Below are positions 796 through 40,789 of a stretch of DNA of 60,477 nucleotides, piece by piece. A program made the position numbers and the translations under genes. The notes under the pieces are model-generated. The model made no database searches. It saw nothing but the letters and a program-made list of their open reading frames with translations, and had not been told where the DNA came from. The stretch comes from Hemiscyllium ocellatum (Eukaryota): NCBI RefSeq assembly GCF_020745735.1, contig NW_026867716.1:62001-122477 (forward strand), read 5' to 3'. The stretch's first letter is position 1. Each line of letters begins with the position of its first letter.

Positions 796-2178
796 GGACA
801 GGCAAAATCTCCGGTGTGAGATTATTGATGATCATTTCAATCCGTTCAACCACAACATTGATTACTCTTCTTGAGTCATTTAGTCTGTAGCTTGCCTTCT
901 TATCAGGAGTAGCTCCCTTATTCCTTGTTACATTCAGTGTTAACTCTTTCCTGTCTACCCAGAACAGATCCTTGATGTTGCATTGACTCCTTCTTCTCAG
1001 GGATGGCTAATTAACATTTGCTTTTAATTCCTTGATTACAGTTTCTACTTGTCCCTAGTACCACTGCATTTCAGAAAAAAGTCATTATTGATTCATTTAA
1101 GCTCTGAATCATTACCAAAGTTCTGAAGTTTACATTCTCACAGCCCCTCATTATTCTAAACTTCAGGGGAAACAAACCCAGCCTGTCCTCCCTCTCCTCA
1201 TGAGACAACCTCCTTCTCAATCTCAGAAACCTCCTTTGAGCCAGCACCAATATCCTTCATTGTGTACAGCATTTGAGATGTGATCTCAGAACTGCCTTGT
1301 ATATCTAAAATAACATGTTTACATTTATATCCAATTCCTCTTTTATTCAAGGAGAGCATTTTATTAACCTTCCTGAATCCATGGTGTAAGATTGTACCTA
1401 CCTTTGTGACCTGATTCCCACCACATGTTAGAATTCTGCAGTGGTTCTCCATTCACATATTTCTCTACTTTTTCCCTGTGTTTCGTGTGTCTGCCCTGCC
1501 CAATGTCTGTACTCTGTGATCAGTACAGGCGAATCCAACTCTCCTGTTCAGTGCTTTAACCAGATGATGACATCATGATCACATTGTGGTTTGTGGCAGC
1601 TTGCAGTAAGAAATTAGTTGACTGCAAACATAAAAATAGAGCTTCATCTGCTGTAAGGGGTTATTCAGTGCCCTGAGATCATGAAAAGTTAGGCATAAAT
1701 GCATTTATTTTCATTCTTGTAATGAGAAATGCAACAACCAGTTTGTGAAGAGTAATGTCCCACAAACAGCACTGTGTTCAATCAGTTAGCCTGTGTATTT
1801 TCATGATGTAGCCTGAGGGATGAGTGATGGTGAGGACACAATGATCTGGGTTGAGGGATGAGTGACAAGGACACTGTAGAGAGCTCCTCTGTTCTTCATT
1901 GAAATAATGCATGTGGAATTGTTCACATCCACCTGAGAAAGCAGGCCAGTGCAACCTTTAACATCTCAGCCACAAGATAACACTTTAGACATTGCAGCGC
2001 TCCATTCGAACTGCTCCGAAGTCTCAGCATTGATCTTACGTTGTAGCCACTGGAAAGGGGGAATTGAACCCACAGCCTTCTAACTCCGAGGGGTATGTGG
2101 TGTCCACTGAGCTGTTGCTGATACCTAACAACACACCTACCAATAAATATCCCCTTATCATTCCTGTTTGTGTTACAG

Positions 2179-2226
2179 ATCAGGACAGTTCCAGCTTCTG
2201 TGCCAAGATTGACAGCAACAGAACAG
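2179..2226 (+). pseudogene. Degenerate paralog of cytoplasmic-tail exon T1 (DQDSSSFCAKIDSNRT-G)
   Basis: Acceptor tcctgtttgtgttacag vs tcctgtttgtattacag at T1; 3' end gacagcaacagaacag vs gacagcaacagaaaag; phase 1-1, 48 nt; donor reads GG instead of GT; tyrosine absent. Confidence 0.6.
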
Positions 2227-2554
2227 GGAAATGGCTGCACCTTGGTGGTTTTGAGCTTTTGTCTAGATCTGAGATGGGATGAGTGACTGGTGTGGACAGA
2301 ACAGCCTGAGAGTTTTCAGTTCAGTGGGAGAGAGGAGTGAATGGAGGAGGGCAGAGAAATACAAAGACCAGTGTCAGTTCTCAATGAATGGGACAAGTGC
2401 GGCTTAAAGGCCAGAGGGAGAGGTCCAGGTGGAGGAAGAGAGTTGGAGGTGGGTGAAAGGGGTCTGTGGGATGGACAGAGGACTCCTGTCCAAAGAAATG
2501 GGCACAGAGGCAAAGGCAATGGAAGAAGAGATCAACATCATGTCGTGTCTGAAC

Positions 2555-3557
2555 CTCGGTGAGGTGGGAGTGCAAAGTGATTAAAACTGAGACCTTTGCT
2601 GAGTACAGAACATTCAGCATCGGAGAAAGGATAGTGAATGTCCAACAAGAGGTGGAGGTAGGAGAATGGGGAGAGACAAGTGGGACAGTGGGTGGAGGAA
2701 GTTTCCAGAGGGGTGGGGGTACATGGTATCGGGTGAATGAGCCGGAGAATTAAGTCGAACTGGGGCTCAGGACAGCTTTGAGACAGTGTGAAGGGGTGCG
2801 GATAGAGAGAGAGGTCAAGATGTGCATATGATGGCACATAGCACTGAGTGTGGGTCTCAGGATGTGGTGAGAGCAGCTGTCTGAGGAGTGATGGACATCA
2901 TGGAGAGAGCTGTGATCCTGGGTGGATTCAAAGCACAAAGGATGAAACTCTTTCACTGTTTGTGTCAACTAATGACTCCGTTCCCTCCCACCAATCCCTC
3001 TCATCCCTATAGCCTCGGTGCTAACACATGCTGTCTGACTACCAGCCTTTGGCCTTATCGAGAGTAGTGGGAACAGGGTAGGAGAGCGGAACTGAGCCAG
3101 AACCAGATCAGTTATGGTCTTAATGAATTGTGGAGAAAACTCAATGGGCCATAGGGCTTGCCCCTGCTGTGAAGTTCGATGTACATATCTTCTTGAAATT
3201 GAAGCAGATGAGGTTCAAAGTTACTGGCTGTGTGGTTTGGGAATTGGCTTTGGGCCAGGAAGCAGAGCGCTGTGGTCTGTGGTTTTATTTCAGACGGGAG
3301 GGAAGTGTGCAGCACTGGTGATATAATTCTCTTCTTGATCTTTGTGAGTGATCTACACTCAGGGATACAGGACAAACTCCAATGTTTGCAGATGTCACAA
3401 AATTCAAAACCTCAGTGAAGAGTGAGGAAAGTGCTGACAGGCTCTGGGGCATATAGGCTGGTGAAATGGCCAGCCAAATGAAAGTTAACACTGGGAAGGC
3501 TGAAGTGACACATCATGATAGGAAGAACAAAGAGAGGTGTGATAAATGGTGTAATTT
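2555..3557 (+). repeat. Left arm of ~1 kb inverted segmental duplication (partner 17930-18982); composite of PLE-like and CR1 RT remnants
   Basis: Near-identical translated ORFs on opposite strands (3112-3375 minus vs 17894-18373 plus: SCIPECRSxTKIKKRIISPVLHTSLPSEIKPQ...); DNA aligns by eye across the whole arm. Confidence 0.9.
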
Positions 3558-4250
3558 TACAATGGTTACAGGAACAGAAAGTTAGCAGAAATGCACATTG
3601 AGAAATCTTTGAAGCTTGGAGGTTTAATGAAATGGATTAAAATAGGCAAAAGAAATGTTTGTTTTTATTGAATGCCACATGGAGTAGAAAAGCAAGGATG
3701 GACATTTCCAAAACATCAGTTTGAACCCAGCTGCAGACACATGACCAATTCTGTGCACTATCCTTTAAGGAAGATGTTTTTGTACAAAGCAGATGAATCA
3801 AATGGTTCCAGAGAAGAGAGACTTCAGTTCTTTGGAGGAACTGGTGTTGTCTTTACAACAGAGAAGATTCAGGGGAGATTTGATTGGGCTGTGCCAATTC
3901 AAGAAGAGTCTTTCGAAAGCAAGTCATGAGCAACTGTTTCCAAAGGCAGGACAGTCAGTTAGTAAATGGATCCAGGTAAAGGTGGTGATGAAAGAACCAG
4001 AGGTCACATGACTGACTCAATGCAGCAGACCCAGGAAAGGACACGGGGTGTGTGACTAATTTCAATAGGTTTTTCAAAGGGCCAGCCCAGGCACAGGGGG
4101 CTGAGTGGTCTCCTCCTGTTATGTATAATGCAGTACAACGGGAAGACAATATTTCCTGTTTTGCTGCCACACTGGAGTGGCATTCCATAAGAGACACGTG
4201 TGACATAACAGAGTTAACTCTGATCTGTACCTGTCAGAGACTGGAACAGT

Positions 4251-4570
4251 TAATTAGATTAAATTGCTTACAGTGTGGAAACAGGCCTTTCGGCCCACCC
4301 AGTCCACACCGACCCTCCAAAGAGCAACTCACCCAGACCCATTCCCCTACATTTACCCCTTCACCAAACACTATGGGCAAGTTAGCATGGCCAATTCGCT
4401 ACCCTGCACATCTTTGGACTGTGGGAGGACATTGGAGCACCTGGAGGAAACCCACACAGACATGGGAAGAATGTGCAAACTCCACACAGACAGTTGCCCG
4501 AGGTGGGAATTGAACCTGAGTCCCTGGTGCTGTGAGGCAGCAGTGCTGACCACTGTGCCACCGTGGCACC
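4251..4570 (-). mobile_element. HE1-like SINE, near full length
   Basis: tRNA-like head at 4500-4570 in reverse complement, central gtgtgggtttcctcc box, tail ..cactgtaagcaatttaatctaat. Confidence 0.92.
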
Positions 4571-5149
4571 CCTTAATGACCTCTGAGACTCAGAACGATT
4601 TGTATTTAACAAGGTGATTGTGAATTGAAACATTATAAAACATCCTGCAAGATGACCAAATGTTCACAAGCTGCAGTAGTTGGTTAATGAATTGAAGAAG
4701 TCCCAAACACACACAAACAATGAAATGATTTCAAAAATACAGAGGCAAAAGCTTTTGAAGTTTGTGTCTTTGGAAGAACAGGGAATGTGTCCAAACACTG
4801 TTCAGTTTCCTGACCGTGAGGATGCAGTCACTGCATTCCTGTTTGTTACTGCAGTTACACGGGATCACCACCAGCTCCAAGTTCCCTTCCAAGCCACCCA
4901 CTCTGTACCGACATGGAAATATATTGTCGTTCGCTCACTGTCACTGGGTCACAATCCTGGAATTCCCTCCCCAGTGGCATTGTGAGTCTCCCAACATTTA
5001 CACCGACTGATGATGAAAGCAAGGACTTTTTGCTGCCTTGTGGAGAGCTTTGTTGTCAAACAGTCACTGCCATAGTTTCTGGAAGGTTGAGCTGTCTCAG
5101 CTGACCCAGTGTTGGATCTCTTCCCCAATGGGCATTGAGAAGCAGAGTG

Positions 5150-5960
5150 CCCTCGTGGTCACCTATGGGCTGGACTGAGACTGGCAATGATGGGCAGAGC
5201 CAGTGATGTCAGCCCTGGGCACCCTTTGGAGGGAGGTGCCTCCCAAGCTACTGAGAGTGCTAAATGTATCCCGGAGTCTTAGCATATACAAGAGGTAGAA
5301 TATTGAACTGACCAGTGATTTGTGTTTTGGTTTAGCAACACTCAAGCATTGACCAAGTCCCTTGTTTGCAGCATTGAAGAGATCAAGGGTGGCTTGCTAG
5401 TTGGGTGCAGAATGTGAAAACAACAGTGATGTTAGCAGTGCGTACTGCATCTTATGTGGGTCTGTTGTGGTCATTTTATTATTGGCATGGATGAGACTGA
5501 GGTTGAGAGATTTCTATCTGGGCCGTGTTTAATCCTGACACCAGAGGTCAAAGCTGCTGTTTGGTAGATTATAGATAATATGGAGCTATCACACAGCATT
5601 GCTTTACTCTGGTCCTGTTCCTTGAAGCCATCCGTTCCTGAAGATGTCAAGTCATCCCAAAGCAGTTGCAGAATTTGGAAGAAGTTTCTGGACATTCCAA
5701 ATTTTAAGAGTATGTCTCAGCAAGTGATTTACTGAGTCATCTGCTGTGATCAGGTTGAGAAATGTAATACAGAGTTCCTGGTGTTGTTTTTGACATTTTA
5801 CTTGGATTTGTCTGACAACAAAGGTCATGTTGGTGATTCCATTGGAAGGTTTAAAGCTGTAGTGTGTCTTTGGGAGGATTCCCACAGCCATAGGAAGTGG
5901 GAGGGTCAGGAGAATGTGTATCAGGATGTTCTCCACTAAGGACAAGATGCTCCACCATTT
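5150..5960 (-). mobile_element. Decayed RTE-clade LINE reverse-transcriptase fragment
   Basis: ORF 5652-5996: ILPKTHYSFKPSNGITNMTFVVRQIQVKCQKQHQELCITFLNLITADDSVN resembles the RTE RT motif LPESQCGFRPxRGTxDMIFxxRQxQEKCREQ...DLxKAFDSVN. Confidence 0.7.
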
Positions 5961-6340
5961 AAGAGGATCATGTCTGAGCTTGTAGTTCAACACCACTTTC
6001 CTGCACCATCCCGTTACCCCTCAATGCTTTTAATGCCGGGAAATCTATCAATCTCATTCATGAACATACTCAATGGTTAAGCTTCCACAGCTCTCTGATG
6101 AGAGAATTCCCAAGATTAACTACTTCAAAACGATAAATTCCCCCTCATCTCAGTTCCAACCACCTATCCCTCATTCTGAGACTGTATTCCCTGGTTCACG
6201 ACAGTGTATGACTCTCACTCTGTAACAAGGGAATCTTTTTGTTGATATGGAAATCCGATCCGTTCACCACATTCCAGATGGGATCTCACCAAAGATCGAT
6301 ATAATTGCAGTGAGATGTCAGGAATTAAGGGAGGGCCACA

Positions 6341-6466
6341 CCAGGAGTGAAGGAAGGCCTGAACCAGGAGTGAGGGGAGGCCTGCAGCAGGAGTGAAGGA
6401 AGGACTGAACCAGGAGTGAGGGAAGGCCTGCAGCAGGAGTGAAAGAAGGACTGAACCAGGAGTGAG
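6341..6466 (+). repeat. 23-bp minisatellite x5.5 with alternating 46-bp higher-order unit
   Basis: ccaggagtgaaggaaggcctgaa / ccaggagtgaggggaggcctgca / gcaggagtgaaggaaggactgaa / ccaggagtgagggaaggcctgca / gcaggagtgaaagaaggactgaa / ccaggagtgag. Confidence 0.9.
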
Positions 6467-6479
6467 TAAGCTACCCTAG

Positions 6480-7275
6480 ATCTCTTCAATGCTTCTAAGG
6501 GTTGTACCATTTACTGTATACTTCCCTCTTGCATTAGACCTTATGCATCACCACATGTCTCTCAAAATTAAATTACAGCAGCCATTTCTGTGCCCAAGTT
6601 GACAGCCTTTATATGTCCTGCTGTATCCTCTGGCAATCTTCCTCACTATCCAAAGCTCCTTCAATCTTTGTGTCATCTGCAAACTTACTAATCATCCCAC
6701 CTACAATATTCTCCAAAATATTTATAAATGTTGTGAACTAACAGGGGCCCCAACACTGACTCCTGTGGATCACGAATGGTCACAGATTTCCAGTCAGAAA
6801 AACACTCTTCCACCACTACTCTCTGTCTTCTATGACTAAGCCAATTCTGCATCCATCTTACCACCTCTCCGCAGATCCATGTGACTTCAATTTCAGTATC
6901 AGCCTGTCATGAAAAACTTTGTCCAAGGCCTTACGAAAGTCCCTGTGGACAATATCTATCACCCTGTCGTTGTCAATCATGAAACTTGCTCAAAAGGCTG
7001 AATCAAGTTTCTGTGACATGACCTTCCTGCACAAAACCATGTTGCCTCGTGTTAATAAGAAGATATTTTTTCAAATTGTGGAAAGCCAATCATTAAGAAT
7101 CTTCTCCAATATTTTCCCTACCACGGACGTAAGGCTCACCAGCCTGTAAGTTCCTGTATTATCCCTGTTGCCCTCAAACAAAGGAACAATGGTGGCTCTT
7201 CTCCAGTGCTCTGGGACCTGTCCTAGGACTAAACAGAATCCAAGGATTCTGTACAAGCTCCCAACAATTTGCTTC
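6480..7275 (-). mobile_element. CR1/HER1-type LINE ORF2 (RT) fragment
   Basis: ORF 7071-7280 VPEHWRRATIVPLFEGNRDNTGTYRLVSLTSVVGKILEKI is the CR1 RT N-terminal motif. Confidence 0.85.
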
Positions 7276-7599
7276 CTCACCTCAATGAGTCAGAGGAGGC
7301 AAATCTCTGTGTCTTTATATTAAAATATCTGTTTCCGTACCCTCCATTTACCAAAGTAAATGGAAAACCATCCTGTACAATGTTTCTAAATGCAGACTTG
7401 CTGCAGTGCAATCTTTGAGACTGGCTGCTGCTTTCCATCACTTCCTGATGACATTGGCTTCCTCTTTGAGCATGTGGCACCTTGTAGCCCTGTATAAATC
7501 TGCTCACTGACAGCCCCTCCCATTCTTCAACAATTACTGTACCTTACAGCAGTGTCCTTTTGTGGGACTGGAGTCACATGTAGGCCAGACCAGGTATGC

Positions 7600-9470
7600 A
7601 ATGGGATGCATTGAAGAAGGAAATAAGGAGGGTACAGGGCTAAAGGGTGGGACCAACAAATCCAGTGAACCTTGAATACTGAGGAATACACAGCATTGGA
7701 TGAAGGGAAAAGGGAGGCTTATGGCAGATTCTGAGAATTCAAAACAGTAGCAATTTCTGGAGGATTATAAAATGTCCAAGTGGGAAATTAAAGTGGAGAT
7801 TCGGAGTGCTCAAAGGAAATATGAAAGTATACTGACAGGTAATATAAAGAAGCATCCAAAATATTTAAAGGAATATTCATGGTAAAAAGACAACAAGGAC
7901 CATGGTTGTAATTGAAACTTGAACCCAGAGGATATATGAACCCAAGCTGTAATTGACAACTTTATGTTGGTGTTCAGACGTGAGAGGGATGATTTTGGTG
8001 TAGAAATCGGGGAGATAGTCTGTGATAAGATTAAAGAAATTAACAGAGAGAGGAACTGCTGAGTGGTATGGGCAGCAAAAAGTAGATAAATCTCCAGGGC
8101 AGGATGAAATGTATCTCAGGTTGTTGAGTGAGGCAGGGGAGAAAATAGCAGGGGCTTTGGAAATAACTTTCCATTCTTCTCCAGCTGCAGGAGAGGTGCT
8201 GGAGGACAGGAGGACAGCCAGTGTGGTACCTCAAGAAGTGAACAAGGGATAAACCAGGAAACGTCAGGCTAGTCAGTCTAAACTCTGTGTCAAAACATGT
8301 GGCAGATCAGGTTGGTGAACGGCTAGTGTCCAAAACATTGTCCCTCCTGCTCCTCAGTTGCTGCCTGAGCTGCTGTGCTTTTCCAGTGCCACACTGTTTA
8401 ACTCTGACTCTCCAGCATGTGCAGATGTGTAGAATTTGATGCATCTTTTTAATGCAAAGGGAGATAGATTTTAAAAGAGATCTTACTGAATGATGGAGCA
8501 GGCTCGAGGGGCCAGATAGGTAGCATCTGCGGTGCAGGAGAATTGACGTTTCGAGTATAAGCCCTTCATCAGGAAGGATCTTTCTTCCTAATGGAAGGCT
8601 TCTCGAAATGACGACTCTCCTGCATCTCAGATGCTGCCTGACCAGCTGTGCTTTTCCAGCTCCACACTCTTCGACTCTAATCTCCAGCATCCGCAGTCCT
8701 CACATTCTCCTCAAGGGGTCAGATAGCCCTCTCCTGCTCCTATTTCTGATGTTCTTGTGTCTTCTTGGATTTCGGCAAAACTTTTGACCAGGTTCCACAT
8801 GGGAGAACGATAGCAAAGGTGAGAGCTCATGGGATCCAAGGTAATTTGGGGTAAATTGGATGCATAATTTTCTGACTGGCAGGAAACAGAGGGTGATGGT
8901 CGAGGGGCATTTTTGTGACTGGAAGTGTGTGTCCTGGAGGATCCCACAGGGGTCACTGTTGGGGCCCTTGCTATTTGTGGTTTGTCATAAATGATTTAGA
9001 CTTGAATGAAGAAGGGTTGATTAATATGGTCCCAGATGATAAACAAATAGTTGGGGTAATAAATATTGAGGAGGATAGCCTTAGACAACAAGAGGATCTA
9101 TACGGGCTGGTCAGATAGACTGATCAGTAGCAAACAGTATTCAACATGGATAAGGGTGAGGTGATACACTTGGGCAGGACAGAAAAAGCAAAGTAAGACA
9201 TAATGAGCAATAGGACTTAATACAGAGCAGTGAGGTTATGCTGGAACTGTATGAAAAATTGGTTAGGTCACAGCTAGAGAATTATGTGAAGTTCAGGAAT
9301 CCACATTATGGGAGGGATCTGGAGAGGGTAAAGAGCAGATTTGCCAGGATGTTCCCTGGGCTAGAGAGTTTCAATTCTGAAGAGAATTTGGATAGATTGT
9401 TTTCTCCAGAGAGGAGGAGATTGAGAGGAGATCAGTGACCATGGGGCATTAATTTAAGGTACGGGGCAGG
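7600..9470 (+). mobile_element. CR1/HER1-type LINE fragments interrupted by Penelope termini (8340-8710)
   Basis: KSPGQDEMYLRLLSEAGEKIAGAL (8022-8252); RGHCWGPCYLWFVINDLD (frameshifted PQGSxLGP region); LELYEKLVRSQLENYVKF (9238-9438). Confidence 0.85.
8541..8576 (-). ncRNA. Minimal type I hammerhead-ribozyme-like motif in PLE terminus (degenerate)
   Basis: Reverse complement cttc-CTGATGA-A-gggc ttat actc-GAAAC-GTC-aatt. Confidence 0.5.
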
Positions 9471-10575
9471 GCGATTGTTTTTATTCAATCATGAAACATG
9501 CATGTCACTGGCTGGCCAGCATTCATTGCCCATCCCTTGTTGATCTCTTGAGAAGATGGCGATGAGATGCCTTCTTAAACCGTTACAGTCCACGTGCTGG
9601 AGGTTGACCCATAATGCCTTTAGGGAGTGAATTCCAGGATTGTGACCGAACACGAGTGAAAGAGTGATGATATATTTCCAAGCCAGGATGGTGAGTGCCT
9701 TGGAGGGAATTTGCAGGTGGTGGTGTTCCCATTGATCTGCTGCCACTGAATGTTTAGCTGGATGCGGTCGTGGGTTGGGAAGGTGATGTCTCAGGATCTT
9801 TGATGAATGTTAGAGGTTTATCGGAGATGTGAGGGAAACCTTTTCACTCAGAGGATGGCGGCAATCTGGAAGTCATTGCTTTTAAGGGTGACACAGACAT
9901 GAAACCCTCATAATGTTTAAGACCTGTTTAGGTGTGCACTTGCAATTTCGATGTATAAGGCATTGGGCAACTGCTCGATAATAGAATTGGAAAGGGTAGA
10001 TGGTTGGTTTTGACCAGCATGGACTCAATGGGCCAAAGAGCCTTTTACTGTGCTCTACATCTCTATTACTCTATGATTAAGACCATTAGGGGTCTTGTGG
10101 TACAGTGGTAATGTCCCTCCTTCAAAGCCAGGAGGTCTCCGTGAAGTCCCACTTGATCCAGAGGTGTGTAATAATATCTCTAATCAAGGTGTTTGAAAAA
10201 TATCTCCAGGAAAGTATTATTCACTTGAAATACCTGGCAATAGGCATCAAAGTGCCACATCTTAGCATGGTGAGGGGATGGTAAGTGGGTTGTGGAAGGG
10301 GGAGCATAAAAGGTATGCCTTAGCAAGAGGCACACTTTGAATTTAACTCCCAATAAGTTCCCTCATGTAAACTGTGATCCCCAATATCTCTGAGACACTG
10401 TGAACCGTGATTCTTTAAAATCATGGACCGACTGGATGTACATTGTGGAGGAGCAGGATGTGTTTCCCTCTGCAATGGAGGGGATTGGCTCAGAGTGCTG
10501 GGTGCAGGGTTTGTAACCTGACCCATGGGACTGTGGGAAAATTGGAAACCCTAGGATAGGGTTGGGAATCATGGA

Positions 10576-10705
10576 GCTGAAATGATTGAATGAAACGCCC
10601 GAAACGTTGATTCTCCTGCTCCTTGGATGCTGCCTGACCTGCTGCGCTTTTCCAGCAACACATTTTCAGCTCTGATCTCCAGCATCTGCAGTCCTCACTT
10701 TCTCC
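10576..10705 (+). mobile_element. Short non-autonomous Penelope terminus (pLTR) insertion with 14-bp TSD
   Basis: TSD ttgggaatcatgga at 10562-10575 and 10706-10719. Confidence 0.85.
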
Positions 10706-11149
10706 TTGGGAATCATGGAATCAGGAAACCCATGGGAAGGCATCTGAGACTTCCCGAGATGGAGAAAGTGGAAAGATCGTTTATGCTCTTCTTTTCTTGA
10801 GAACTTCAATCAAATCATCCCACACCTTCCAGTGTAACAGGATACAAACATAATTTGTGATCCCACACCTTGTAATTTAACTCTGTGAGACCTGATGTCA
10901 TCATTCTGCACCACACTCTTTCTCAGGTCAGAATATCCTTCCCAAGGTGTGGTGCCCAGAACTGCTCATGAATTGAAAAAGAAATAAAATTAAAGATTAT
11001 CCTTCTCACGTTCAAATTCTTCCACGGCATTGGGTCTGTCATCCTCATAAACTCACAGTATTTCCAAATCTGGCTCCTCCATATCCCTTCCTGTAAATGT
11101 AAACTCACCATAGTCCCAGAGGGCATCAGGCTTTTCTCTCATTAGAGAG

Positions 11150-11297
11150 GAAAAGCTGGGCAAACGTGAGGACTGCAGGTTCTGGAGATCAGAGTCTAGA
11201 TTAGAGTGATGAAGGGCTTTTGCCTGAAATGTCGATTTTCCTGATCCTCGGATGCTGCCTGACCTGCTGTGCTTTTCCAGCACCATTCTATACTACA
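11150..11297. mobile_element. Short Penelope pLTR insertion, two inverted halves, 12-bp TSD
   Basis: TSD ctcattagagag at 11138-11149 and 11298-11309; internal gtgatgaagggcttttgcctgaaatgtc is a decayed hammerhead core. Confidence 0.8.
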
Positions 11298-11635
11298 CTC
11301 ATTAGAGAGAGATGTGTGGTGGTGGTTTCACCGGACTGGAATAGTAACATCACTGGGGTCTAATTTTCAATCTCCAAGACTGTGAGAATTCCTGTCTAAA
11401 CCTCTCCAACTCTCCTTCCCCCTCTTAAGTCACTCCTTAAGACATGCGTGTTGGAACACCACCTGTCCAAATAACTCGGAATATGGTTTGATGTCTGATT
11501 CTCCTGCAGTTCATTGAACATTTTCCAATGGTAAAGCTGTGATGTGAATCCATGATTCTGTATGATTCTTTGATTCTCGAGTCAGAAAGCGAATGCAGTA
11601 AGGCAGTTTCAGAGTGAATCCTGTTTGTATTACAG

Positions 11636-11689
11636 CTCAGCCTGACTCCTGTACCTATGCCAGCATCGTGTTTGACAGCAACAGAAAAG
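11636..11689 (+). CDS. Cytoplasmic-tail exon T1 of an inhibitory-type immune receptor (xQPDSCTYASIVFDSNRK-G)
   Basis: Acceptor cctgtttgtattacag, donor G|gtaacc, 54 nt, phase 1-1, ITIM-like motif C-T-Y-A-S-I; joins T2 in frame across a 95-nt intron. Confidence 0.8.
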
Positions 11690-11784
11690 GTAACCAGCTA
11701 CATACTTTTTTTCCCACATCGTGGTATTTCTAAACATTTAAAATACATCCTCCTCACTAACAGACTATTCTCTTTCATTTCAAG

Positions 11785-11820
11785 GTGGCAAGACTCTCCG
11801 GGTTGCTGATTCAGAAGAGA
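11785..11820 (+). CDS. Cytoplasmic-tail exon T2 (GGKTLRVADSEE-T)
   Basis: Acceptor ctctttcatttcaag, donor A|gtgagt, 36 nt, phase 1-1, in frame with T1 and T3. Confidence 0.8.
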
Positions 11821-12342
11821 GTGAGTCAGGTTTGTCCTTTCCGAATCCTAATCCTAATTCTTTCTCCTATCCCAATCCCTGAAGCCCATTCTCCGATGTG
11901 TGGGACAGTGCTAGTTGGGCCTGGGTGATCCATTTCCTTGTTATTTGAGACCCCAACTTTGGGTGGCGCTATTATGGAGATTTGATCACATGACCTTAAA
12001 GCCCCATTCCCTCACCAGGATGCTGTTGTCATTGGCCCGTCGGTCTGTTCATCTTCATTAGGATGTTCCTTTACTCCACCAATCAGAAAGCAAACAGTCT
12101 CTCCACGATCCCATTGGATGACACTTGACTGTCTCTCAAAAAGCTTGTCTCTCCCAATGTATTTGTGAACGTCATAAAGAGAATGAGGGGGAAATGTACA
12201 ACTGATGGAGTAAATATTTCCCTTTCCTGTAACTACTCTGATAGTGATGGGACTGATATTTGGGTAAATATGCCCCTTTCCTGTATTTACTTTTAAACTG
12301 AATTTATAATTATCATCAGCTCTGATTTCTGTCTCTTTCTAG

Positions 12343-12380
12343 CGGATGTAACCTATGCAGCTGTGGTGAAGACTCATTAG
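12343..12380 (+). CDS. Terminal exon T3 with canonical ITIM (TDVTYAAVVKTH*)
   Basis: Acceptor ctctgatttctgtctctttctag, phase 1, V-T-Y-A-A-V fits the ITIM consensus (I/V/L/S)xYxx(L/V), stop TAG at 12378-12380. Confidence 0.85.
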
Positions 12381-12598
12381 GAGCGAATAAGAACTGAACC
12401 TGTGTAACTGAGGTTGCATTGTTTCTCAGATCAAATTCAAGGAATGTCATGGAACTTACCAGCTCAGAAACTTGGCATTATTATTCTTCAAAAGTGTTTT
12501 TTAATTTTAAAAAAAAAATTGTACCTTTTTTTCTTAGTGTATTTTTAAGTGTTTATGGGATACTGCACACTTTTGAAAGCAAGTAACCTGACACTCAT

Positions 12599-13696
12599 TG
12601 TAAGTGTTGTTTACACAGCTGCTGGGTCAGACAGCAGCAGAAGAAGGTGCAGACGAACTGGAGACATGGACAAGTGGCGATTCAGCCAGAAACAACTATG
12701 TGATTGGTTCCCAGATAATTGAACAATTTGTGGATATGAACATGACAGGGAGAAGCCATCCGACCTCCACTTTCTGAGGAACTGTTCATCATCTGTAGCA
12801 CAGTGGCACAGTAGGCGGCACGGTGGCACAGTGGTTAGCACTGCTGCCTCACAGCGCCAGAGACTCGGGTTCAATTCCCGACTCAGGCGACAGACTGTGT
12901 GGAGTTTGCACGTTCTCCCCGTGTCTGCGTGGGTTTCCTTCGGGTACTCCGGTTTCCTCCCACAGTCCAAAAGATGTGCGGGTCAGGTGAATTGGCCATG
13001 CTAAATTGCCCGTAGTGTTAGATAAGGGGTAAATGTAGGGGAATGGGTGGGTTGCGCTTCGGCGGGTCGGTGTGGACTTGTTGGGCCGAAGGGCCTGTTT
13101 CCACACTGTAAGTAATCTAATCTAATCTAATCAGCTCTGTTCCCGGCAGGAAAAGCTACTTTAAATCTGAGGATAACCAGCTGATTGTCTTTTCCTTCAG
13201 CAGTTGCAGTAAGTTCTGACCTTTAATGAGTAAGTCAGACCTTTTATAAGCCACACACTGTATCTCTAGTAAACCAGTGACAGCATCTGGAGAAGCAGCA
13301 TTCTGATCAGCACAAGAATCATCTCAGCGGATCCTGCAAACAGGGATTGGCGAAACTGTTTTCTGTGTGTTCCTTCCACTTTAGTTTCTGTCTGTGTGTC
13401 TGTGTCTGTGTGTGCACACACACGCGTGTGTGTGTGTGCACGCGCGTGTGTGTGTTTCTGTGTGTGTACAATATGTGCTTGCTTTTAAGGGGACTTGGTT
13501 CATGAGCATCTTAGAGTTTTAACTCATGTTGTTATAGCTCAATGGTCCATCATTTTTCTGTGGAATTAGAGTCTATTTATGTGTGATAAATAGTAATCCT
13601 TGTGAAATCCAGAAACCTAGTCTGTGCCTTCTGTCATCTTTAGTCTAAAACTCAGGAGAATGTTATGGACTTCTATAAAAACTAACTTTTGTGACA
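12599..13696 (+). mobile_element. Probable solo LTR downstream of the ITIM gene stop codon (contains nested SINE and GT microsatellite)
   Basis: TG...CA termini (tgtaag...gtgaca); flanks actcat / actcag (5 of 6 match, TSD-like); internal (GT)n at about 13388-13467. Confidence 0.6.
12814..13132 (+). mobile_element. Young full-length HE1-like SINE nested in the LTR
   Basis: ggcggcacggtggcacagtggttagc...gggttcaattcccg head, CpG-rich, tail gtaagtaatctaatctaatctaatc. Confidence 0.95.
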
Positions 13697-21066: not shown

Positions 21067-21349
21067 NNNNNNNNNNNNNNNNNNNNNNNNNNNNNNNNNN
21101 NNNNNNNNNNNNNNNNNNNNNNNNNNNNNNNNNNNNNNNNNNNNNNNNNNNNNNNNNNNNNNNNNNNNNNNNNNNNNNNNNNNNNNNNNNNNNNNNNNNN
21201 NNNNNNNNNNNNNNNNNNNNNNNNNNNNNNNNNNNNNNNNNNNNNNNNNNNNNNNNNNNNNNNNNNNNNNNNNNNNNNNNNNNNNNNNNNNNNNNNNNNN
21301 NNNNNNNNNNNNNNNNNNNNNNNNNNNNNNNNNNNNNNNNNNNNNNNNN
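21067..21349. other. Assembly gap (283 N) next to a CA/GT microsatellite
   Basis: Run of n in the sequence. Confidence 1.
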
Positions 21350-22710
21350 ACGCACGAACCCACATGCAGACACACACACAGACACACACACACAAACTAA
21401 GCTCTGGTCTTTGGGGAGGGGGAAACCACTTGAAACAGTTTCAATGGTCCTCTGTTCACAAGACCTGCTGAGATGATCCTTGTGCTGATCAGAATGCTGA
21501 TCGTTGTTCTTCCTTCTCCAGGTCAGCACCTGGAATAATTTGTTTTGAAAGTCTGTAATAAACAGAAATCAGAGCAGCTCAGAATTATAATTTCAGTTTG
21601 AGGGGAATTACCTGAAAGGGGAACATTTACCTCAACAATTGTACATTTATTTTATTAATTGATAGGATGGGTGTATCACGGGCCAGGCCAGCACTTATTG
21701 CCCATCCATAGTTGCCCAGAGAGCAACCAAAACCTAACCATACCGCGGTGGGTCTGGAGTTACATGTTGGCAGAAGTGGGTACTGCAGATGTTGGAGATT
21801 AGAGTCAAGATGAGAGTGGTGCTGGAAAAGCACAGCAGGTCAGGCAGCATCTGAAAAGCAGGCAAAAGCCTTTCATCAGGAACTCATCAGGAATCACATG
21901 GAGGCCGGTCCCTGTAAGGATGGCATTTACTGTCCATAAGGACATTACTGACCCAGACGGGTATTTCCTGACAAGTGGTAATGAGTTTGTAGTCACTATT
22001 AGACTCTTAATTCCAGATTGTTTTGTATATAAATTCCACCATTCCCTGTGGAATGATTCAATTCTAGTTCCCCAGAACATTACCTGGTTCTCTGGATTAA
22101 CCATCCAGCCAATTTGCCATGATGCCCTCACATCCTCTTTTCCCTCATTCTCTTCCTGACCGGGATAAACATACTGGGAGAGACAAACTGTTGACCGACG
22201 GTCAAGTACCATCTAATAGGATAGGGGAGAATCTGTTTGCCTTCTGATTGGTGCAGAAAACCAACACCCCAATGAAGATGGGCAGGTTGGCAGACCAATG
22301 CTAGAGCACTGGGATGAGGAGGTGGGGCTTGGAAGTCATGGGATCAACCCCCAGTGATCTGACTGAACAGCATTAGAGATGCCAGGAACAAGGAACTATA
22401 TCACACAGCCCCAACTGGTTCTATCCAATACATGGGAGAGTGGGATCCTGGAGCCTGGGAGCAGGTGGAGTGTCAGAGAAAAAGGGAGAGGAAATTAGAA
22501 CTGGTGTTGAAATGAAAGACTGATTCACTCACGTCTGAATAAGCAACTCAGAGAGTCTTGCTGTTTGAACTGAAGGAGAATTGTTGTTATTGAGGAGGAT
22601 TACTTTTAAACATTTAGATTCATCACAAAATGGAATAGTATATAAAATATGCTGAAGAACAATTATCGTCACTTACCATTTTCTGCTCCTGTGCCTTCCC
22701 TTTCCAGCCT
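21350..22710 (-). pseudogene. Inverted paralog of the ITIM-tail locus (T1'-T2'-intron-T3' acceptor) lacking the ITIM exon
   Basis: 32-nt exon 22677-22708 (acag|gctgg...aaaatg|gtaagt); T2-like segment about 22533-22565 (gcaagactctctgagttgcttattcagac|gtgagt; in-frame TGA in the T2 frame); intron homologous to 11821-12342 (caccaatcagaa.gcaaacag; gagaatgaggg); acceptor ctctgatttctgtttattacag at 21553 is followed by sequence matching the LTR near 13235-13400 instead of VTYAAV. Confidence 0.8.
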
Positions 22711-39600: not shown

Positions 39601-39938
39601 TTCCTATATCTTATGGGCTACCTGCCTCAGTTCTCAACACCTCCATTTCTGAAACCTGTAAATCCCATTTCCTTTTCCAACCACATTCTTAACATGTCCT
39701 GACATCTTCAAAAACAAATTAGGGAGTTGATGGGATACCATGGGAAGTTTCAGACACGGTGATGGAATGGTCCATAAATCCCAGCCTCATCTCTCTCTCT
39801 CTCCTTCTCACTGCCTCCTGCCTGAGACCAACTGAAAGAGCCCAAGAGAAGGAGCTAACCCGAGAGCTCCCGGTCCAGGTGGATCCTGTTCTCATTGAGC
39901 TATCGGGACAGTGACACCATCCAAACATTGTTCCTTAC

Positions 39939-40319
39939 CTTCAACTTCCAGCGTTGTTGGAGACTTTGTTTGAAAATTCTCAATATTGAGCTCTACACAA
40001 TAGGGATCAGCATCCTCCTGGCTCAGTCCTTTCATCATTATTGAGACATTGTGGTTGGTGAGACCCCCCACGAATCTGAATCGATTCCCACCCTCGTGCT
40101 GTATCACATTCTCACACAGCTCACCCTGGGAATGGTCTGGACCAGGATATGTACACTTAAAGATAAAAGCCCGTATTTCCTCCTTGTACCATAAGATGGA
40201 GCCGGTGAGTGTGAGGTGAGTGTCAGGGTGGGTGAAGCTGCAGGGTAAGACAGCGGAGCCTCCTTCCTCAGCCCTCACTCCATCCGCGACTGTCATTGAC
40301 CAACCATTAACAGAAACCA
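39939..40319 (-). CDS. SIGLEC15-like: V-set Ig exon V1B, Siglec-15-like, open frame but lacking the sialic-acid-binding Arg
   Basis: Acceptor ccctcacag, donor G|gtaagg, 381 nt, phase 1-1. GWSMTVADGVRAEEGGSAVLPCSFTHP...ILW...FIFKCTYPGPDHSQGELCEN...RFRFVGGL...EDADPYCVELN matches the Siglec-15 V-set pattern as recalled (WSMQVPPEVSAEAGDAAVLPCTFTHP; extra Cys pair FRC...ELC; RFRLLGN; YFCRVE). Orthology not established. Confidence 0.85.
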
Positions 40320-40789
40320 CTGTGAGGGAAGAGGGAGAGAGAGAGAGGGAGGTAGAGTCTGAACACAGCACTGGGACAGACATCAGTGTGTGGAAGTGAA
40401 ACTTGGAGACTCTATTCTGAGTATGTTATTTAGTGAGAACAGGTTAAACAGCTATAATGAGAGGGAGTGAACAAATAGTAATGTAAATTCATGAGCAATC
40501 CAATACACTGGGGACAGAGTTTCTGTTCCCACCATGGCAGCTGCTGGAAATTCAAATCAGTTATTACATCAGGAATTAAACACCAATCTAATGGGAACCA
40601 TGAAACCATGATCAATTGTTGGAAAAAATCCATCTGGTTCACTGATGTTCTTTAGAAAAGGGAAATACCGTCCTTACCCAGTCTGACCTGCATGTGACTC
40701 CAGTCCCACAGCAACAGATTTGACTCTAAACATCCCACATCAATGACAAAGGGAGACACTGAGTTGGACAAAAACAGTATAAAATGTGA

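Follow-up and report, generated by a model that had tools for sequence, protein, structure and literature searches.

Three terminal micro-exons encode the tyrosine-motif tail of a probable inhibitory Siglec-15-like receptor in the shark Hemiscyllium ocellatum

The plus strand of a 60,477-nucleotide stretch of the Hemiscyllium ocellatum genome (hereafter the window) carries three short exons which are, very probably, the last three coding exons of a type I Siglec-15-like V-set receptor, LOC132826527 or LOC132809452, with its body upstream of the window and a tail that would operate by an inhibitory mechanism. Assignment to one or the other of these two loci rests on 41–44 identical residues. 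Within an unstudied receptor family of sharks and rays the gene is nothing out of the ordinary, and the exons themselves are already modelled in RefSeq, as parts of predicted, uncharacterised proteins.

The three-exon tail, its RefSeq counterparts and its conservation

Direct reading of positions 11400–12600, combined with a scripted rebuild, resolved three plus-strand exons of 54, 36 and 38 nt with AG/GT borders and in-phase joins. Tail exon 1 (11636–11689, +; 54 nt, phase 1 at both ends) is preceded by ttacag and followed by gtaacc, and encodes ...QPDSCTYASIVFDSNRK, its first two bases completing a codon begun in an upstream exon. It harbours the ITIM-like motif CTYASI at 11650–11667 (Tyr codon 11656–11658). 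Tail exon 2 exists in two forms. The short form (11785–11820, +; 36 nt, ttcaag before and gtgagt after), found in RefSeq isoform X2, encodes GGKTLRVADSEE, while the long form (11785–11829, +; 45 nt) uses an alternative donor at 11829/11830 (CAG/gtttgt), which adds SES and changes the junction residue from T to A. Tail exon 3 (12343–12380, +; 38 nt, ttctag before) encodes DVTYAAVVKTH and the stop codon TAG at 12378–12380, and contains the canonical ITIM VTYAAV at 12348–12365 (Tyr codon 12354–12356). Read from the third base, the joined exons give 41 stop-free codons, and all six splice sites and the reading frame of the three-exon tail are intact. The description given in the sequence-only reading, of three micro-exons of these lengths splicing in phase to a 41-residue tail, proved exact on re-reading, in the script and by identity with RefSeq. 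Its spacing of 27 residues between the two tyrosines is likewise confirmed for the short exon 2, to which we add a spacing of 30 residues for the long form used by RefSeq isoforms X1, X3 and X4. Rfam gave no match anywhere in the window.

The protein family was reached by a protein search with the window's Siglec-15-like V-domain open reading frame (39895–40425, minus strand) as query, and the C-termini of 100 listed matching proteins were compared with the window by script. P0146 (XP_060698488.1, LOC132826527 isoform X2, Hemiscyllium ocellatum) has a C-terminus identical (100%) to the 41-residue product, and its ending ...EETDVTY... is that of the short exon 2 form. The long-form tail, ...EESESADVTY..., ends P0159, P0160 and P0149 (LOC132826527 isoforms X1, X3 and X4) as well as P0121 and P0126 (LOC132809452 isoforms X4 and X5), and the C-terminus of XP_060698480.1 (LOC132826527 isoform X1) is identical to the window's long-form product. 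The 45-nt exon 2 is therefore the commoner version among the RefSeq isoforms, and in neither form of exon 2 do the tails of LOC132826527 X2/X1 and LOC132809452 X4/X5 differ from that of the window. In tblastn against the window, pieces of P0159 match 11638–11697 and 11781–11828 with a joint E value of 9e-11; residues 255–270 fall on 11781–11828, and residues 271–282 on 12342–12377 at 100% identity. The contig that carries LOC132826527 is 153.6 Mb long, and the scaffold with LOC132809452 is 122 kb long. Given that RefSeq models already end in exactly this tail, the earlier description of it as hidden does not hold.

In two of the long-form models, P0149 and P0121, the membrane exon is skipped (...LQVH/GGSQQ...), and a secreted protein keeping the tyrosine-motif tail would result. 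Most likely, these membrane-exon-skipping isoforms result from faulty prediction or from non-productive splicing.

Tails homologous to that of the window end proteins of other sharks, among them P0006 (Mustelus asterias, of V-V-membrane-tail layout) and P0007 (Heterodontus francisci). In tblastn, residues 367–384 of P0006 map to 11635–11688 at 83% identity, and exon 1 is identical at 17 of 17 residues to whale-shark P0104 and at 83–88% to P0006 and zebra-shark P0102. Proteins of Stegostoma, Rhincodon, Heptranchias and Heterodontus with this tail also came up in a word search using that of P0006, rays have the same tail in a more diverged form, and a search with P0102 returned many RefSeq proteins of Hemiscyllium ocellatum. 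In an alignment of 24 shark and ray tails both tyrosines are invariant, as are the Ala that follows the first and the Val at −2 of the second; CTYA is kept in more than 90% of the relatives, and the stretch between the motifs varies freely.

The zebra-shark gene of P0102 (locus L001) has the same three exons as the window, in the same order and with the same borders and TAG. L001 28102–28767 is collinear with window 1601–2265, and L001 32420–33275 with 11604–12487, a correspondence that covers the 3' part of the gene only. Between the two species 112 of 128 exon positions are identical (87.5%), as are 444 of 571 positions in the two introns (77.8%). Exon 1 is 94% identical at the DNA level with the same borders, and exon 3 shows 7 nucleotide differences, 5 of them synonymous, before the same TAG. 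Over the 41 codons we counted 8.5 synonymous changes across 28 sites and 7.5 non-synonymous changes across 95 sites, corresponding to a dN/dS of 0.21 (Fisher p about 0.003–0.006), a value drawn from 41 codons only and from a zebra-shark gene that may be a paralogue and not an orthologue.

Because synonymous change is in excess, exon borders are shared and the tyrosines are invariant, we regard the coding reading of the three-exon tail as secure. The exons are very short, and the introns too are well conserved (77–83% against zebra shark) in a slowly evolving genome, both of which can be counted in favour of chance open frames that happen to be bounded by AG and GT and have no coding role. However, annotated C-termini match the product at 100% identity, another shark has orthologous exons with the same borders, and the synonymous excess and the tyrosines conserved across sharks and rays point the same way. 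The probability of a chance origin appears negligible on these comparisons, and we consider it refuted in practice.

A discrepancy with the other sharks is seen at the start of exon 2, where alignment with zebra shark reveals a migrated acceptor (11776–11784, +). The ancestral cag is now cat at 11776–11778 (11778 being T), which destroys the old AG, and a new AG at 11783–11784, 6 nt downstream and in frame, takes its place with the loss of residues VQ (tttcag/TTCAAC in zebra shark versus tttcatttcaag/G in the window). The zebra-shark 'sialic acid-binding Ig-like lectin 12' (P0102, L001) and the whale-shark 'Siglec-15 isoform X3'/LOC109922807 (P0104–P0106) have the same terminal exons, borders, stop and tyrosine motifs as the window but, unlike it, keep the ancestral acceptor and hence the two extra residues. 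VQ stands at the start of exon 2 in zebra shark, whale shark and more distant sharks (RKVQGG), whereas the hemiscylliid tails all lack it (RKGGK or RKGDK). Replacement of a lost acceptor by an in-frame AG would fit continued use of the exon.

The owning receptor and its relation to Siglec-15

The RefSeq products P0146 and P0159, on which domain content was tested in place of the window DNA, consist of a leader, a V-set domain and a membrane anchor without Lys or Arg. Proteins with such tails vary in the number of V-set domains, from one (P0159) through two (P0113, P0161 and P0121) up to four (P0108); the owning proteins have an uncharged membrane segment and a cytoplasmic part of 100–113 residues. 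A third tyrosine motif, the canonical ILYAEI, is contributed by an upstream exon of the RefSeq product that lies outside the window. The P0159 gene spans 72.4 kb, and none of its leader, V, membrane or proximal cytoplasmic exons was found on the window's plus strand; nor was a GKRF-type cassette, or a membrane or proximal cytoplasmic exon, found on the plus strand between 1 and 11635. Because the body exons of P0159 are missing from this strand and the collinearity with zebra shark is confined to the 3' part, we take the gene's body to lie upstream of the window. The proposal that the ectodomain lies there is thereby supported, as is membership in the same Ig cluster, in the sense that the receptor belongs to the same Ig family as the Siglec-15-like exons on the window's minus strand. 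A hydrophobic stretch at 5428–5487 (+) was considered as a membrane exon and rejected: it lacks homology to the family, its acceptor is weak and the phase of its donor does not fit exon 1.

The minus strand carries, by exon matches, the body of a Siglec-15-like gene at 40296–31223. It comprises a V1 exon (40296–39940, −) with small deletions near the F strand, a V2 exon (35850–35490, −) with a frameshift and an in-frame stop, a membrane exon (33942–33838, −) that matches RefSeq P0003 (XP_060690388.1, 'Siglec-15 isoform X1') at 100%, and two cytoplasmic exons (32579–32511 and 31348–31223, −) that match P0003 at 100% and 97.6%, respectively. The P0003 model ends by donor read-through, without any tyrosine motif. 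A further V1-type exon (58791–58350, −) carries a disrupting stop or frame break (HPP*HS), and a V2-type exon at 51040–50657 (−) is intact (V-set E 2.7e-16). The V1-type and V2-type exons suggest a tandemly repeated V1–V2 block upstream of the minus-strand gene.

The best PDB match of the family's V1 domain is human Siglec-15 (7ZOZ; E 7e-15), and its second V domain resembles V domains of the pIgR/TIM type. P0113 and P0102 have two V-set domains and no separate C2-type domain (Pfam), and the Siglec-type V1 is present in both, with a full V1–V2 ectodomain in zebra-shark P0102; the LOC132826527 products P0159 and P0146 carry the second-type V only. The likeness to human Siglec-15 thus lies in V1 and, for the short-tailed members that have a membrane lysine, in the DAP12-type anchor. 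Human Siglec-15, however, is built from a V and a C2 domain with a membrane lysine and no ITIM, whereas in the family C2 is replaced by a second V-set domain, and the present gene has an uncharged anchor and a long tyrosine-motif tail. Since a second V replaces C2 and the DAP12-type lysine is absent, the gene is not Siglec-15 proper, although its ectodomain family descends from Siglec-15. In the literature library searched, no paper dealt with a Siglec-15-related receptor family of sharks or rays; the MDIR receptors of skate, reportedly the subject of Cannon et al. in 2006, may be an earlier description of related genes.

Modular exons and decayed copies

In the zebra-shark gene and in the RefSeq isoforms, all cytoplasmic exons after the membrane exon start and end in phase 1 and have lengths that are multiples of three (48, 36, 54 and 36/42/45 nt), so that skipping or duplicating a tail exon leaves the frame intact. 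For example, one exon is left out in isoform X3, up to three CTYA cassettes are present in Heterodontus relatives, and the tails of relatives contain up to four tyrosine motifs.

The window retains a decayed upstream tyrosine cassette (2179–2282, +), whose 48-nt exon at 2179–2226 aligns to the zebra-shark DQD...FYVEI exon. In the window the Tyr codon has become TGT (2199–2201) and the donor gt has become gg (2227–2228), whereas the zebra-shark cassette still has both the tyrosine (FYVEI) and the donor. Read-through of the decayed cassette leads to a TGA at 2280–2282. In Chiloscyllium punctatum the equivalent exon is read through to form the annotated end of P0109, with 90.6% identity over 32 residues to 2181–2276, and the Hemiscyllium ocellatum RefSeq models skip the cassette. 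Between the upstream cassette and the tail, the zebra-shark gene has 3.1 kb (L001 28768–31932, including a GKRF-type exon) that have no counterpart in the window. In their place the window has 9.3 kb (2266–11547, +) consisting mostly of repeats, with SINE-like copies at 4253–4574, 8330–8711 and 10597–10706 as well as reverse-transcriptase open reading frames.

A second copy of the tail locus, inverted and decayed, lies at 21562–22618 (−) beside an N gap (21067–21349) and is ~69% identical to 11729–12332. Its equivalent of exon 2 (22569–22529) keeps the ancestral cag acceptor but has lost one nucleotide and meets stops in the frames tried. The coding sequence of exon 3 is absent, homology resuming only with 13281–13416. 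We considered this copy as the tyrosine-less partner of a receptor pair, and set the idea aside in favour of a dead remnant on account of the deletion, the stops and the missing exon 3. A (TG)n microsatellite follows both tail copies at matching positions (13420–13500, +, and 21350–21400, −), after a homologous stretch (13281–13416 versus 21499–21365). The implication is that the duplicated unit extended past the end of the gene.

Decay of this kind could mean that the tail itself is an orphan or pseudogene, that is, a young and still intact copy whose gene is dead or rearranged upstream, the RefSeq models being derived from an identical paralogue elsewhere. The cassette upstream on the same strand has lost its tyrosine and donor, the inverted tail copy is clearly dead, family V exons in the window have stops and frameshifts, and an identical tail is common to two RefSeq loci. 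Against this, the three exons have kept all six splice sites and an open frame, the dN/dS is 0.21, and a new in-frame AG has made up for the lost ancestral acceptor. Furthermore, the dead cassette is of a skippable type (48 nt, phase 1 at both ends) and is in fact skipped in the RefSeq models. We therefore judge an orphan tail to be quite improbable, and retain the reading of the exons as the end of a receptor gene with its body upstream.

Tentatively, the modular micro-exon tail could be a device that tunes inhibitory strength in the Siglec-15-derived receptors of sharks and rays, with duplication, cassette death and splicing setting the number (one to four) and spacing of ITIM-type motifs. 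We put this forward as a possibility that we would not favour at present. If true, the window would show three such steps in one gene, namely a dead cassette serving as an ITIM-less alternative end (2179–2282), the 6-nt in-frame move of an acceptor, and a dual donor that shifts the tyrosine spacing from 27 to 30 residues.

Motif class and proposed inhibitory mechanism

The distal motif VTYAAV meets the ITIM rule (S/I/V/L)xYxx(I/V/L). With Cys at −2, the proximal motif CTYASI fits neither the ITIM rule (S/I/V/L at this position) nor that of an ITSM (T at −2), leaving no canonical tandem pair inside the window. The earlier proposal of tandem ITIMs thus stands for VTYAAV, with CTYASI being only ITIM-like.

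Two kinds of member, encoded by separate genes, are cleanly distinguished in the family: those whose membrane segment contains a lysine and whose tail is short, and those that combine an uncharged membrane segment with a long tail of tyrosine motifs; the lysine-anchored relatives include P0133, P0137 and P0140. By analogy, this two-kind split matches that of activating receptors paired with inhibitory ones. The sequence-only reading had set an inhibitory receptor of this type apart from DAP12-coupled Siglec-15, which is right in that the present gene is of the tyrosine-motif type, with the correction that the DAP12-type forms would be its sister genes with a membrane lysine.

Tails of CD33-related Siglecs, KIR, LILRB and LAIR-1 have two tyrosine motifs ~20–30 residues apart, the distal one being of the VTYAxV/ITYAAV type in LILRB and LAIR-1. 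These receptors have an uncharged anchor, together with activating partners anchored by lysine or arginine. The shark tail is like them in spacing, distal motif, anchor and partners, a likeness of layout, and it differs in the Cys at −2 of the proximal motif and in its assembly from phase-1 micro-exon cassettes.

We postulate that ligand binding would lead Src-family kinases to phosphorylate the tail tyrosines, and that the tandem SH2 domains of SHP-1, SHP-2 or SHP-2L may then dock on the two phosphotyrosines, 27–30 residues apart. The docked phosphatases would damp activating signals, giving an inhibitory outcome, and the short-tailed members with a membrane lysine would be the activating, DAP12-type counterparts. 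All three phosphatases, along with their SH2 pockets, are conserved in sharks. We infer recruitment of SHP-1/2 by the tail. Ala follows Tyr in both window motifs (CTYASI and VTYAAV), and on PD-1 an Ala after Tyr has been reported to favour SHP-1 (PMC12151841).

The same tyrosines might instead serve mainly as YxxPhi signals for sorting or endocytosis, or as a switch motif for other SH2 adaptors, and not as phosphatase-recruiting ITIMs. Both YASI and YAAV fit YxxPhi, and at −2 the proximal motif departs from the canonical ITIM rule. ITIMs of CD22 and of CD33-type Siglecs double as endocytic signals, a precedent that can be counted on this side. However, VTYAAV does fit the ITIM rule, and its invariant Val at −2 is not needed for AP-2 binding and is typical of SHP SH2 ligands. 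In addition, the 27–30 residue spacing suits tandem SH2 domains, and the existence of lysine-anchored relatives recalls the known activating/inhibitory pairs. A mainly sorting or adaptor role appears unlikely to us, and sorting and ITIM functions are in any case mutually compatible. We keep an inhibitory tail as the preferred reading.

Taken alone, the finding adds little, as the exons are already in RefSeq. Its value is that of a checked example from a receptor family of sharks and rays that is large and has no name, and of a clean case in which a signalling tail is assembled from skippable micro-exons. The family comes in what would be a brake form, with a tyrosine-motif tail, and an accelerator form, with a membrane lysine, and paired activating and inhibitory signalling on a Siglec-15-type scaffold would thereby be pushed back to the cartilaginous fishes.
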